Assembly (NCBI GenBank): GCA_907165135.1
Contig: OU015568.1
Span: 13,578,001 to 13,642,000 of the forward strand
Length of the DNA: 64,000 bases
Reading direction: 5' to 3'
DNA from: Oikopleura dioica
Taxonomy: Eukaryota; Animalia; Chordata
Shown here: positions 56,046 through 62,100 of the stretch, piece by piece
How positions within the stretch are numbered: position 1 is the stretch's first letter
How the letters are laid out: the number at the start of each line of letters is the position of its first letter
Translations under genes and position numbers: made by a program
Notes under the pieces: model-generated
The model's database searches: none
What the model was told of the DNA's origin: nothing
What the model saw: only the letters and a program-made list of their open reading frames with translations

Positions 56046-58526
56046 CTATCTTCGCGCAACTTCGGGTTGATAAGTGACATGTTGATCCCACTTTTCCCGC
56101 GCAGAAGCATCCATTTTATGGCGGAATTCGTCGTATTCTGCGGCTGGAAGATTTCGAGTTTCCGAAATTTCTATTGATTTTGTTCCTTTTGCGAGGAATT
56201 CGCGTAGAACTGGCAGAACATCCGCTACTTTGATGTTAAATTTTCTATAGGTAGTCCAAGCATTACCTTGTAAGCCACTGCAGTTTGAAAGATTCAGACA
56301 TTCATCCAAGGGAATTTGCGACGCCTCAGACACCAATTTGCTCAGACCATCAGCTGTCAGACGCACACAAGCCATAAGTGACAGCGAGCGAAGATCGGGA
56401 AGTTTTGAAAGATGAAACATTGCATCATCGGATATATCAGCCCCGTCTAGTATGAGCTCCTGCAATTTCATCAGTCGAGAATGGGAGGGAGAAGGCGTGC
56501 CCATTCTGATATTCCCTGTCGGGCAACTCGTCATTTCTTCGATCGCCGCATCTGTAACAACGCTCCAGGACAAATCAAGGCATCGTAGAGGTGGTGCCTG
56601 ACGATTGATTAGAATAAGATTCTAATTTCACTATACCTGGCCCGTGTTGATTGCTGAAATCGCGCTCCAGGATGCGCCGCGGAGGATCAGCTTGCGCAAC
56701 ATCGGGCTTCTGGACAGAAGAAAAGCTGTCTGGCGATACGTACAGGAAGTTGGCAAGGAGACAGATTCTGGAGCTCTACGCATTAACCATTTTAGGCTCG
56801 ATGGGGTCAAAGAGTCAAGATGACTTAGATCTACATGACGCCATAATGTTCTTGCCGTCACAAATCGATGGAACGCCTTACAAGTTTGGGCGACTTTAGC
56901 ACGATCTCTTGTACAAAGTGTCGAGAAAACTTTTCCCCAGATTTCTTCGGGGAAATTGTGGCAGATTTTATTTGCAGTCGAGGCCTTCTTCTCTCCGTTA
57001 ATTTTTAGATGCGTTGGCTTGAGTTTTTGTGCTTCTGACGGGAGAATGACCATTACGCTTGGTAGGACTTTCGGTTTCGGAATCTCGATTTTCAGAACCT
57101 TCGCTGGCGGCTCTTCGTGAGTGTAGTGGATGATCGTAGGCATCAAAATATTCTTTGGAAGGACATCCGCTATGTGTTCGGAAAGAATTTTCTAAAAGCG
57201 AATGCACCAATTACAAAAATGTTTTTTTTACCTTGATGCAAGCCAAAATTTTGTGCGAATCAATGCTAGCCGGGCAATACTTGGTTGACGTTGACATAAT
57301 CGATAGCCGTTTATAGAGTTTTTTCAAACCCTTGATTTCTCTTAGATGATTTTTAGGGATGAATACGGACTGTGCTACTTACAGTGGTGCTAATTTATGA
57401 GAACTGGTTACGACTTGACTGTATGCGTGCATAACATACCACATGAGAGGCCAAAAGTGTGGAAACTTCTCTCGATTGGGAACTTTTAGTTTTTCTTCCA
57501 TTTCAACGACGCGCACTTGCATCTTCATTGACAATCCGTGGAGAAAATTTCCGCCGAAATTGATGCAATCCACAGGTGTAAAAACCGCATGAATCCAACC
57601 AGATGGAATAAAAAGTGTTTCGCCAGCTTGGACTCGTATTCTTTGACATTCATCAACCTTGTCGCCAAAAAATACTTGGTCTTGAGCGCCGCTCAACGTC
57701 CACTTTTCGAAAAGCTCAAGATTCTTCTTCGTCGGAGGGATGAACCAGAAAATCTTCTCACCGCGGTGAACGTGGTACCAAACGCTTGTCCCCCCGAAGT
57801 CTACGTGGAAGTCCGTGTAAGAATTGGCGGGAGAAACAAGACAGTATTTTTGGACTTTTGGCCAAGCAAGATCTAATTCGCCGTCTGGAACTGGTCGTTT
57901 GCTAACGGGCCAACAAAGTGTTACATGATCGATGGCGTTAACGATCGAAGGTCTGCTCACATAATCTAAAGATGTGTATTTTAATAAAATTCTAATTAAT
58001 TCCATTCGACTACCTGACAAGGCGGTGTCGCCGAATTCGAGAGATAATAAATTCAAAATTCTTCTTTTCGTCCTCCTCTCAAAATACCGTACAAACCGCG
58101 AAAAGGTCATCTGCAGACCCTGAAAAACATTTGGAATTCTGATTTATCGCATGGGCAAACCTGTTGATTACGACAGTCAATTAGATCAACGACGCGTTTT
58201 CCACCGATGAGTCGTTCAACATCACGTACGGTAAAATTTTTGGGAGGTAATGTCATCCCAAGTCCATCTGGTTTTCTAAACATCATTGGCCATTCGAAAC
58301 CAGTCTCAGCAAGATATGCGTATGTTAATTTTTCTCCTGACGGAAAATCTCTCACGAATTTTGGCTTTGTATATTTTTCAGACAGCAACTAGAGTCGAGC
58401 GTCGATTGATAATATCGCAATGAAGAGCCTTACCTGCATTTCTATGTCGAAAGATGTTGCTGGTGCTACTTCTTCATCATCGGAAGCGACCATATCTTCT
58501 GGATCAGAACTTTCAAGATCTGACAT
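56046..58526 (-). CDS. KDM2: JmjC histone H3K36 demethylase KDM2 (FBXL10/11): JmjC + F-box + LRR, no CxxC/PHD
   Basis: YTDFHVDFGGTSVWYHV..GEKIFWFIPPT..FIPSGWIHAVFTP..FGGNFLH; F-box FPEEIWGKVFSTL..TCKAF..LWRHVDLS; LRRs (LRSLSLMACVRLT). Confidence 0.93.
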
Positions 58527-58596
58527 ATTCTCTAAACAAATCACATTGATTTATAGGCGTGGCATTGTTTGTTGAAGAAGAAATAATTAATTTATT

Positions 58597-60052
58597 CTAT
58601 TTGAGAGTGACAGTGACAATATATCCGTATTTCCCGGCGATTTCTTCTTGCTGGACCTTGGCTTCATACTTCGATGTCTGAGACCACTTGAACCATCGTT
58701 CAACACGTGTCTCTGGAGGTTCTTCTGTCAGCTGTAAGACCTTTCCCGATGGCCCCAATACACGCACCATTTCATCCATCGCTTGGAAAGAATCGGATTC
58801 TTCAAGTCGCATAAAGGCATCCATTGTTCCCTGAGAACGAATGAATTACAATCGTTGAAATCATGGAGGAGTCAAAATACACCCACCTTGTCAATAATAT
58901 AATCGATAGAGTTGTCTGCACAGGTTAAAGATCTACAATCATCTTTACAGATGACTAGTGAATTTCCATTTTTGACGAGAAGAGATTCAGAATCGCCAGT
59001 CTTTTTCGAATAGTTTTCAAGGAGAGTCTCAACTGATTTTGCCTGAAATCGGCAAGCTTCCTCAGAAAAATCGATCGCCCAACCATCAAGGTCTAAAGTC
59101 AACTTATAAAATCCGAGTAAAATTTTGAGTCTTACTTTTCATCATAAAAATAATGCGAAGCATCAAAGTGCTTGTGCCTACCCCCAAGTCAAGGATGGAT
59201 ACGCGGTGATCTCTGTCAGTATCTGCGATTGATGTGTGTCTCTTGATGAAATCGAGAGCTTGGTTTTGATTCAGAAACCAATCTTGCTTCTGCTTCCGGT
59301 GGTATCCATCCCAAAAATCTTCCTTTGCCAATGGAATGCTCTCAAGATCGGCAGAATAGCTGTCAGATATTTGTGGATTGGGCGGTGGGTATTTCAAGTT
59401 GGCGATTTTCAATGCTCCAGATTGTTTTCTACTGAGAACATCTGGAATATCAATCTCATAATATTCTGGGTCCAGTGGGTCAAACTTTAGATCCGGAAAA
59501 AGTATAGAAAGCTCGTTATGCGCACTATCCAAAGCGTCTGACCTCCACTGGGCTTTAACTGTTCTTCCGAAGAGTTTTATAAGAAATAGTTAGAGCCCGT
59601 TACCCATGGAAAGAGTTTCTCGTGTCAGAAATCCCGTAATCATGCCGAAGAGTATCCGGATTTAGATATTTAGTTTTTGTGACCTTCGTTGGGCCGATTA
59701 ACTGGCGCCAGTTTGCTATAACATTCTCGCCTTGCAAAGCAAGAGCAATCACTGGTCCAGATCGAACATAAGCTTGGAGTCGCGGATAAAAGAACTTTCC
59801 CTCGTGTTCGGCATAAAATCTGGCAGCCTGGGAGGAGGATATCTCAGTTTTTTTGGCCGCTAATATGTTGAACTTTTCATCCGCATCTAATTTTTCTAAT
59901 ATTTTTTGAACTGATTTCGGTGAAGCCGTAACTGTCAGAAGGGATTATTTTTTATATTCAAATCAATTATTCATATGCAATGGTCCCCTCCCTGAAGGTT
60001 TTAAAATTGCCAAAGTGACTTCCTGCGCCCGGACTATCCTCGAAAAGAACAT
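58597..60052 (-). CDS. NME6: Fusion of nucleoside diphosphate kinase 6 and CSKMT/METTL12-like lysine methyltransferase (about 411 aa)
   Basis: VTLAILKPS, FYAEHEGKFFYPRL, LIGPTKV, DTRNSFHGSD (NME6). An uninterrupted linker leads to FWDGYH..DWF, ILDLGVGTS, AIDFSEEA, IDYIIDKGTMDA, EMVRVLGPSG..LQLTEEPPETR (CSKMT-like). Five exons sum to 1236 nt. Confidence 0.85.
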
Positions 60053-60398
60053 TCTAGTACACAATGAACTCAGTATTACAAGCTTCTTACTTAGTAATAC
60101 TTTTGAAATGTTGAAGTTGAAAATTTATTGAGATATATTTTTTAAAAAAATGTTGAAACAATGAAGAGCTGATCGGAACAGGCGGCAAAAGTCTTAATTT
60201 CATTGAATTGGCGATTTTCACAGCATCTATTCGTCATCAAAGAATTCCAGTCAATTTTCATCCTGGACATGTAAACAAAAAATAAAATATATTAGGCGCA
60301 GCATCATGTGTAATTTTCAAATTAGACATTGGAGGCAAGAAAAAATATAAATTAAAGTTTTGGAGGAAATAAAGTTGGTTTGAATTTTTGGAGGAGCT

Positions 60399-62100
60399 TT
60401 AGAATTTTTGCTGTTTTTGAAGAGCTTTGACATCAAGTGAAACGAGTTGAGTTGGTGTTGTGCTTTTATTGGTGCTGGGAGACTGCGTCGACGGACTTTC
60501 TTTGACACACTTTTGGACTTCTTTAAATAGGGTGTCGAGAAGTTGTCACAAAGAAAAATACTCAATAAGTGACTTGTACAAAACCCTTGCCTGAGGACCG
60601 CCTAACAGTTGGTCTCCTTTCATTGGCAAAATTTTCAACGGGGTCCCGCTGTACTCTGCTCCTGGAAGAACTATCAGCGTGACTATCGTCAGAGGAAGAA
60701 TTTGACGGTGATGTTTGCACATTCCTTGAAATTTGTGGAACTCGTGCTAGCTCCCGCACAGCGAGAGGCTAAAAATTGATGGAAAATTATCTTGAGTAGG
60801 TAATATTAGAACTGGATTGATAGGAAAGAACGAAAATTTATTTTAGTTAACTAATTTCTACAGCTGAAATGTGACGATAAAACTTACCATAGACGAGTTT
60901 CTCTGATGCGTTCTGCGGCCACTACCGTGTCTAGATCCACCCGATCCAGATCCAGGGGTCCACATTCCAGAGTCGACACTGAGCCTATCGTTCTGGTCAG
61001 CGTCAGATGGATCCGACATATTGTCAATATGCTCTACAGAGTCAGCACGCCTAAGATCAGAAAGAACAGATCTGCAAGAAGAGGTATCTGACTGGTTGTT
61101 TCCAGTTCCAGCGGCGTTAGGGACTGTTAGATGATCTGATTTACCCTTATCAAAGAGTGACGCTCTGTAAGATATTCTTGAACTTACGGAAAGGTTTGAT
61201 TCTAGACTCTGCAACTTCCGATGCAAATGAATCTGCTCAGATATTGTCTCAAGAGTACGCAGAGCTGCTTGGTAGTCACTTTTCGAGATGTGTAGTTTTT
61301 GTTCGATTTCATTCACAGTGTTTCGTTTATCCTCCATTTCGGCCATTTTAATCACCTTCAGCTCAAAGTACGGTTTTGAAGAAATTATTGATCGCTTTTG
61401 GGATTTTTGAAGACTTCGCATTGTTCTCTGCAATAAAGTTTGATTCTTTACAATCAAGGAGGACTCACCTCGATCTCTTGCAGCTTTTGAATCTTTTGGG
61501 TGTGTAATTTTGCAGCTTCTTGTCGTTCTTTTTCTGCGATATTCACCTTTTCTGTGGCTTGGTTAAGCATTTCCGCCCATGCTAGCTTGTCTTGAGCATC
61601 CGCACCGACGGTACTTTCAAGGGAGGCCTCAGCAACGGCAACCATTTCTCTGGCAGCATTATGTCTTGAAGCCTAGATAGAATTATTCAACAAATGATAT
61701 TTATGAAAGAAATTACAGCATGTTCAAATTTTTCGGTAGCTAGTTGAACTGCGTGTTGTGCTTCTTTGAATTTATTTCTTGACTCGTAGTAAGGCCTCGA
61801 TTTCTTGACGCAAGAGCCGAGTGTTTTCTCCAGCGCTCGTAAATCATGTGATATTTTCTATTGAAACATAACTGAGTTGGAGCTTTTGTTTTACTCTTAC
61901 GTGAAGGTATGTTCGGTACTCAGTTCTAGCTTTCGTTAAAGCAGTTTCCAAGACGTTTATGTCTGTTCCAGCGTTGTTCAGTCGCTCCAGTTCCTCTGTA
62001 TGTACTTCATTAGCTTTGATCCTAATTACAACTGCTTACCTTGAACTCTGGGGTCTGTATCACCCTCACCATTTTCAAAAGAGCTTTCTTCACCTGACAT
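60399..62100 (-). CDS. SH3BP5: SH3 domain-binding protein 5 (SAB/parcas family Rab11 GEF)
   Basis: DPRVQ, EELERLNNAGTDINVLE, SRPYYES, AWAEMLNQATEKV, SKPYFELK, YQAALRTLETISEQIH. Confidence 0.92.

Follow-up and report, generated by a model that had tools for sequence, protein, structure and literature searches.

A 64,000-nucleotide (nt) stretch of the Oikopleura dioica genome was analysed here and is called the window (assembly GCA_907165135.1, contig OU015568.1, positions 13,578,001 to 13,642,000, forward strand). On its minus strand, at 60052-58597, lies a five-exon gene whose frame runs from a nucleoside diphosphate kinase (NDK) domain through a linker into a methyltransferase domain. We consider it very probable that this is one gene giving one mRNA and one polypeptide of 411 residues, composed of an NME6-like NDK, the linker and an eEF1A-KMT4-family methyltransferase closest to CS-KMT (METTL12). 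A first-pass annotation had proposed an in-frame fusion of NME6 with a CSKMT/METTL12-type methyltransferase. The open frame, hidden Markov model (HMM) matches and cDNAs of relatives agree with that proposal, which does not imply strict orthology to either protein.

Gene structure

Exon-by-exon translation gave a single open frame of 411 codons followed by TAG, and the exon lengths given in the first-pass annotation (61+328+407+206+234 = 1236 nt) were recovered (Table 1). Exon 3, which it had described as stop-free, is open throughout, from SDALDSAHNELSILFPD to LDLGVGTS...IIFMMK. The end of the NDK reads SD...NELSILFPD and is followed by a 55-residue stretch, by EDFWDGYH..DWF and by S-adenosylmethionine (SAM) motif I. 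The first in-frame Met of this exon does not come before residue 127, and AATAAA is absent from it. Two details of the annotation needed revision. The spacer between the NDK end and the first methyltransferase motif measures ~50-55 residues, not ~45. The resemblance of the N-terminus MFFSRIVRA to a presequence is weak, as only ~10 residues precede the first NDK strand; their net charge is +2 to +3 in all lineages.

Introns 2-4 are all GT..AG and measure 61, 43 and 56 nt. Intron 1 is GG..AG, and this is the sole splice that yields the reading ILKP(S/T)VT(A/G)SP conserved in relatives. Non-canonical introns make up ~11% in the O. dioica genome (PMC8008620). The joint between exons 4 and 5 was confirmed by a metatranscriptome contig. 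Whole-protein searches, fold predictions and alignments were run on natural full-length relatives (P0005, P0012 and others), and the window itself was searched exon by exon.

Table 1. Features of the NDK-methyltransferase gene, in window coordinates (slash, splice junction)
Feature	Position	Strand	Evidence
Exon 1: ATG, short basic N-terminus MFFSRIVRAQ, first NDK strand EVTLAILKPS	59992..60052	-	tblastn alignment collinear with P0005 and P0012
Intron 1, 60 nt, non-canonical GG..AG	59932..59991	-	GG shared by L004
Exon 2: NDK domain core through NSFHG	59604..59931	-	Pfam PF00334, E 1.4e-26; metatranscriptome contig over 59646-59819
Exon 3, start: finishes Gly of HGSD, NDK C-terminal helix (SDALDSAHNELSILFPD)	59491..59542	-	Translation; dN/dS 0.02-0.05 against L001-L003
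Linker: 55 codons, acidic (net -4), 8 Pro, without Met, stop or poly(A) signal	59326..59490	-	Translation; no indel in L001-L004
Exon 3, end: N-terminal extension of the methyltransferase (EDFWDGYH..DWF), then SAM motif I (LDLGVGTS)	59136..59325	-	Metatranscriptome contig over 59125-59315
Exon 4: Post I (DFS), strand of motif II, Post II up to ..IIDK	58887..59092	-	Exon 3/4 joint (MMK-N-LDGW) also read by P0017
Exon 5: remainder of Post II (GTMDA) and of the seven-beta-strand fold, TAG at 58599-58597	58597..58830	-	RNA contig X1, joint 58886/58830
AATAAA poly(A) signal, immediately 3' of the stop	58591..58596	-	Sequence
Candidate spliced-leader trans-splice acceptor AG, 1 base 5' of the ATG (TACTAG/A ATG)	60054..60055	-	Sequence; leaders of relatives' cDNAs join at 0-9 nt

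Conservation of the fusion across larvaceans

A word search with exon 3 recovered four genomic open reading frame (ORF) fragments on contigs L001-L004. L004 is 98% nucleotide-identical to the window, and L001-L003 are 71-75% identical. Neither a stop nor an indel interrupts exon 3 between the NDK tail and motif I in any of them (0/4), the linker included, which extends the open frame to other individuals and lineages. The splice sites were preserved, and the intron sequences were unalignable. The ratio of nonsynonymous to synonymous substitution rates (dN/dS, Nei-Gojobori) along exon 3 was 0.02-0.11 in the NDK tail, 0.08-0.14 in the linker and 0.04-0.13 at the start of the methyltransferase. 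The linker is therefore coding sequence under purifying selection, which acts on both domains as well.

An exhaustive search with exon 3 yielded P0005, a fused protein of 413 amino acids (aa) whose residues 131-265 align with exon 3. Further fused proteins of 411-424 aa (P0012, P0015, P0016, P0018, P0019 and P0020) and a partial one, P0021, came from cluster look-ups and another word search. These relatives share 40-50% identity with P0005 along 98-100% of its length, and NDK and methyltransferase Pfam domains are present in all of them. A metagenome scan with a methyltransferase profile found one additional larvacean genomic locus (L016/L017), again in the order NDK, linker, methyltransferase. 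It also returned five distant loci (24-30% identity) that are methyltransferase-only, the nearest 2.5 kb being free of an NDK. Outside larvaceans the scan revealed no fusion, though its sensitivity is too low to exclude one.

At the sequence level, the fused architecture is thus conserved in at least nine divergent larvacean lineages, O. dioica included. The fusion event is ancient and not specific to this genome. The first-pass annotation knew of no described NME6-CSKMT fusion, and a literature search for an NDK or NME6 methyltransferase fusion likewise returned nothing relevant. Both domains are known families; it is the NDK-methyltransferase architecture itself that is new, and it has been kept across larvaceans.

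Transcript evidence

Intron-less cDNA contigs of ~1.3 kb, each with the whole 411-424 aa ORF, were found from five distinct relatives. Contigs L006, L007 and L009-L013 begin with the Oikopleura spliced leader (SL), placed 0-9 nt before the NDK ATG. The SL sequence of O. dioica has been published (PMC6883708). The leader is present at its full 40 nt in L012 and L013 and over 23-29 nt in L006, L007 and L009-L011, and its 11-mer occurs nowhere else within these contigs. L006 ends in poly(A) at its 3' end. In two species cDNA could be compared with genomic DNA (L006/L014 and L009/L008). In both pairs the leader was absent from the genomic locus, and three or four introns had been removed from the cDNA, one of them inside the linker by cis-splicing. 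The contigs are SL-capped and intron-less, and some end at a poly(A) tail; mature mRNAs of the whole fusion therefore exist in several larvaceans. The first-pass annotation had considered that transcripts might always end, or be trans-spliced, inside the linker; the SL-capped mRNAs of the relatives span it, an answer that comes from relatives and not from this species. The leader at L011:24-48 differs from that of O. dioica by one base (TTTTCGAG vs TTTTTGAG), and all contigs other than L011 carry an identical leader despite protein identities of 40-50%.

For O. dioica, three species-labelled bulk RNA runs barely map to the window, with 90-95% identity and a depth of ~1 read on the gene. At 60122-60727 their reads show many fixed differences and small indels relative to the window. 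At 90-95% identity, these reads therefore come from another cryptic O. dioica lineage. One metatranscriptome supplied four short contigs, covering exon 2, the 3' part of exon 3 and the exon 4/5 joint, and missed the linker. The contig at 59125-59315 continues beyond the exon 3 donor for 11 nt of intron 3 and could be pre-mRNA or DNA left in the library. Of SL trans-splicing, the acceptor AG is all that is seen in the window, the leader itself being shown in relatives.

The NDK half

The NDK domain was recognised from the window directly, exon 2 alone scoring 93 bits against the Pfam NDK cut-off of 27. In P0005 the match (E 5e-37) extends over profile positions 1-134 of 135. Nine residues (K18, Y60, R96, T102, R116, N126, H129, S131 and E140) are invariant in alignment A3, which holds seven divergent fusion proteins. 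The corresponding motifs in the window read ILKP, FYAEH, WRQLIGPT, LRHDYG, TRNSFHG/SD and NELS, the slash marking intron 2. The catalytic His of NxxHGSD and SAM motif I, reported as intact by the first-pass annotation, are both invariant among the fusion relatives.

By language-model features, NME6 clusters scored 0.92 and were the second and third nearest in a nearest-neighbour ranking. The larvacean half shares with NME6 a single NDK domain, the catalytic His in NxxHGSD, all nine conserved residues and a very short N-terminus before the first strand. Human NME6 consists of 186-194 aa, stands alone and requires RCC1L to be active, whereas the C-terminus of the larvacean protein extends into the linker and the methyltransferase. 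Human NME6 reaches the mitochondrial matrix without a conventional targeting sequence (PMC11312278). Group II NDKs joined to other modules are known from NME7, NME8/TXNDC3, NME9 and Chlamydomonas RSP23. In those ciliary proteins, however, the NDK is paired with DM10, thioredoxin or additional NDK domains, and never with a methyltransferase.

The methyltransferase half

The second half is a class I seven-beta-strand SAM-dependent methyltransferase, as indicated by HMM searches on relatives, by its fold and by motifs I and Post I. The relatives carry PF13847, PF08241 and PF13649, and full-length relatives reach or exceed the thresholds of Methyltransf_31, _25 and _11. P0005 matched Methyltransf_31 with E 3e-6 and 27.4 bits, the cut-off being 27; on full-length relatives, then, both halves match their families by HMM. 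Residues D248, G250, G252, D273, D333, K334, G335 and D338 are invariant in alignment A3.

This half also belongs to the eEF1A-KMT4-like family of lysine methyltransferases, by its Post II motif and by its closest solved structure. The family, comprising eEF1A-KMT2, eEF1A-KMT4, METTL12 and METTL13's N-terminal domain, is defined by a Post II sequence, [D/E]-K-G-T-x-D, that immediately follows beta-strand 4 (PMC5737405). In the window Post II reads IIDK/GTMDA, split by intron 4, and the RNA contig confirms that joint; in one relative F replaces T. A phmmer search of the PDB with exon 3 returned chance matches to Vif alone (E ~0.5). A profile built from eight methyltransferase halves placed 2PXX, which is human eEF1A-KMT4 (PMC5737405), first in the PDB with E 3.8e-7. 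The AlphaFold model of the domain has a mean predicted local distance difference test score (pLDDT) of 88.4 and a predicted template modelling score (pTM) of 0.86. Ranked by E-value, a Foldseek search of the PDB with this model returned generic methyltransferases; it became informative after re-alignment, in which 2PXX again came first (Z 20.9, root-mean-square deviation 2.3, 180 residues, 21% identity) and the next entry had Z 18.9. All 1000 re-aligned methyltransferase chains had Z of at least 8.

Comparison by shape in the ESM Atlas gave template modelling (TM) scores of 0.82 and 0.81 over 194-197 residues for CS-KMT clusters, 0.78 for eEF1A-KMT4 and 0.76-0.77 for METTL13. By language-model features the CS-KMT score was 0.97, and CS-KMT clusters ranked second and fourth. 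METTL12 trimethylates citrate synthase (K395 in human). The larvacean domain resembles it in the seven-beta-strand fold, motif I, Post I and the Post II sequence DKGTxD. In vertebrates METTL12 is a protein in its own right (~240 aa), equipped with a mitochondrial targeting sequence at its N-terminus (PMC5737405), whereas the larvacean domain is internal, lies behind the acidic linker and has neither a start codon nor a targeting sequence of its own. With eEF1A-KMT4 the domain shares the subfamily and the Post II motif. However, eEF1A-KMT4 and METTL13 are cytosolic enzymes that methylate eEF1A, they rank slightly below CS-KMT by shape, and after Post II eEF1A-KMT4 carries an insertion of 10 residues that the larvacean family lacks. 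EEF1AKMT4 was itself originally annotated within ECE2 owing to overlapping sequences, and is a distinct protein.

This closeness raises an alternative in which the fusion is real and its methyltransferase is of the eEF1A-KMT4/METTL13 type, or acts on a new substrate, with the NDK supplying GTP locally to a GTPase that is methylated only in its GTP-bound state. Cytosolic eEF1A or mitochondrial EF-Tu would be the candidate substrates. The best solved match, 2PXX, speaks for it, but the structure of CS-KMT is unsolved, and hence the PDB ranking cannot favour CS-KMT. The eEF1A-KMT4 and METTL13 clusters lie just 0.04-0.06 TM under CS-KMT, yet CS-KMT clusters come first by shape and stand high by features. 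Methylation of eEF1A K36 by eEF1A-KMT4 needs GTP (PMC10238732), NME6 acts with RCC1L at the mitoribosome (PMC11312278), and reviews describe CS-KMT as mainly confined to vertebrates. Against these stand the missing insertion after Post II and a fusion partner of the mitochondrial NME6 type. On balance we regard this alternative as unlikely.

The linker

The linker measures 47-55 residues in every lineage and is net acidic (-2 to -8 in 8 lineages). Between species its identity averages 22%, whereas the NDK and methyltransferase domains average 62% and 43%, respectively. In the full-length AlphaFold model of P0005 it has pLDDT < 50. In O. dioica the linker has no Met, stop or poly(A) signal, and the methyltransferase half is therefore not translatable alone.

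One ORF could nevertheless give two proteins, if the linker were cleaved after import, as in some mitochondrial polyprotein precursors, or if a minor mRNA were trans-spliced internally. The predicted disorder of the linker and its faster evolution relative to both domains would fit such a scheme, and some relatives have a Met within it (P0015). However, an acidic linker in 8/8 lineages looks unlike a basic internal presequence or processing-peptidase site. Further, this species has no in-frame Met before motif I, an SL join inside the linker was found in 0/7 cDNA contigs, and the linker is held in length and under purifying selection. We judge a two-protein outcome distinctly improbable.

An intron interrupts the linker in two relatives (L014:2876-2975 and L008:5252-5290), after codons 154 and 163 and in different phases. 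O. dioica has no linker intron; its intron lies at HG/SD (codon 130). The linker intron may reflect intron turnover or be a trace of an old gene boundary. A further reading, which we think rather unlikely, is that it is the remnant of an operon spacer, a trans-splice acceptor having turned into a cis-acceptor. If true, this would give a route from operon to fusion gene. Stop loss between operon neighbours is a candidate origin of the fusion.

Neighbouring genes and the public gene model

Downstream of the fusion lies a KDM2/JmjC-like gene (JmjC-F-box), its ATG at 58526, 70 nt past the stop, with the AATAAA between them. The same order, fusion followed by KDM2, is found in L001 (L001:1846-2571) and L014 (L014:4895-6063), and this conserved arrangement looks like an operon. 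The upstream neighbour is SH3BP5 in the window and in L005, and a DUF3512 gene in L014. The last SH3BP5 exons of the window were located at 60801-60592 and 60455-60411 by tblastn with the L005 protein. RNA reads lie over 60122-60727, and SH3BP5 cover stops near 60130, ~80 nt before the NDK ATG. On L005, a contig from a sixth relative (L005:1-3202), the spliced leader precedes an SH3BP5 ORF of 414 aa, and an NDK-methyltransferase ORF of 413 aa follows after a 470-nt spacer. This layout suggests co-transcription of SH3BP5 and the fusion gene; L005 is either a dicistronic precursor or an assembly merge.

The public model of the locus, Oidioi.mRNA.OKI2018_I69.PAR.g12338.t1 (P0017, 568 aa), differs from ours. 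It joins SH3BP5 exons 62100-60927 to 59442, inside exon 3, and omits the last two SH3BP5 exons and all NDK exons. Over its share of exon 3 it is 99% identical to the window, and exons 4 and 5 read alike. By this match the window belongs to the Okinawa lineage of O. dioica, chromosome PAR, or to a sequence nearly identical to it. The model was generated by AUGUSTUS (PMC8008620), and chimeric models are a known problem of this genome. We read P0017 as a prediction chimera in which SH3BP5 has been merged with the methyltransferase half. The true first exons may have escaped annotation owing to the GG donor of intron 1.

Were the public model correct, the protein would be an SH3BP5-methyltransferase and the NDK exons a separate gene or pseudogene. 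P0017 has that structure, and L005 carries both ORFs together. Yet P0017 skips two SH3BP5 exons that are conserved in L005, RNA reads lie over 60122-60727, no read joins ~60927 to 59442, and the two ORFs of L005 are separate, 470 nt apart. Five relatives have SL-capped monocistronic NDK-methyltransferase mRNAs, and the model's AUGUSTUS origin adds to the doubt. We hold this explanation to be very improbable.

Least credible is an artefact or recent accident, whether an assembly error or a private stop loss merging two operon neighbours: the genome is operon-packed and the neighbours lie 70 nt downstream and ~80-90 nt upstream, but the same open frame occurs in the independent, 98%-identical L004 and in three ~75%-identical contigs, the same architecture recurs across numerous samples and studies in proteins that are 40-60% identical, and this explanation is already refuted by the open, indel-free exon 3, its dN/dS, the relatives' fused proteins and the SL-capped cDNAs.

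Proposed function and significance

We thus favour a single polypeptide with an NME6-like NDK and a methyltransferase nearest to CS-KMT. Several observations weigh against parts of this reading. Taken singly, the methyltransferase exons of the window reached no Pfam threshold. In this species the linker (59316-59515) and the exon 2/3 joint are without any RNA read or contig. In sequence searches of the PDB, which has no NME6 entry, the best NDK matches were NME7 domains. The NME6-like character of the NDK half is a supported lead from nearest-neighbour searches, short of a demonstrated orthology. CS-KMT appears to be the nearest family member of the other half, again on a nearest-neighbour basis and by a small margin over eEF1A-KMT4 (TM 0.82 vs 0.78). 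Post-translational cleavage of the protein is conceivable from sequence. Finally, the full-length model of P0005, built on a shallow alignment (mean pLDDT 65.6), is uninformative on the packing of the domains.

In the single polypeptide, the NDK domain would occupy ~residues 11-149. It would be joined to the seven-beta-strand lysine methyltransferase through a linker, ~55 residues long, that is acidic and predicted to be flexible. Both activities have probably been kept, given the invariance of the nine NDK residues and of motifs I, Post I and Post II. Lacking a start codon and N-terminal targeting, the methyltransferase half can be translated only together with the NDK half. Should the protein, like human NME6 and CS-KMT, be mitochondrial, the methyltransferase would also be imported by way of the NDK half. 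The simplest benefit would be co-translation, co-import and 1:1 co-localisation of an enzyme regenerating nucleoside triphosphates (NTPs) in the matrix with a matrix protein methyltransferase. By analogy with CS-KMT, citrate synthase would be the default candidate substrate. Catalytic cross-talk between the halves is possible, with nothing in this analysis in its favour.

A more far-reaching, Rosetta-stone interpretation is that NME6 and a CS-KMT-type methyltransferase act on one mitochondrial matrix target or complex, which we think rather unlikely. One possibility under this interpretation is that the fused kinase, by making NTP on the spot, would gate the methylation of a nucleotide-binding substrate. 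Candidates for such a substrate would be an enzyme complex of the tricarboxylic acid cycle and, at the NME6-RCC1L-mitoribosome hub, a translational GTPase. If this interpretation is true, the same coupling exists unfused in vertebrates.

For annotation, the chimeric public model without its NDK half means that non-canonical introns and operon packing can hide real fusions and create false ones. For mitochondrial biology, the finding concerns two parent proteins that are recent and partly understood players. NME6 supplies (deoxy)nucleoside triphosphates for mitochondrial gene expression, and is active only in complex with RCC1L. CS-KMT has been described as mostly restricted to vertebrates, and the finding would move a CS-KMT-like enzyme into the sister group of vertebrates. 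That selection has kept the fusion across a whole tunicate class predicts a shared place, and perhaps a shared process, for the two activities.

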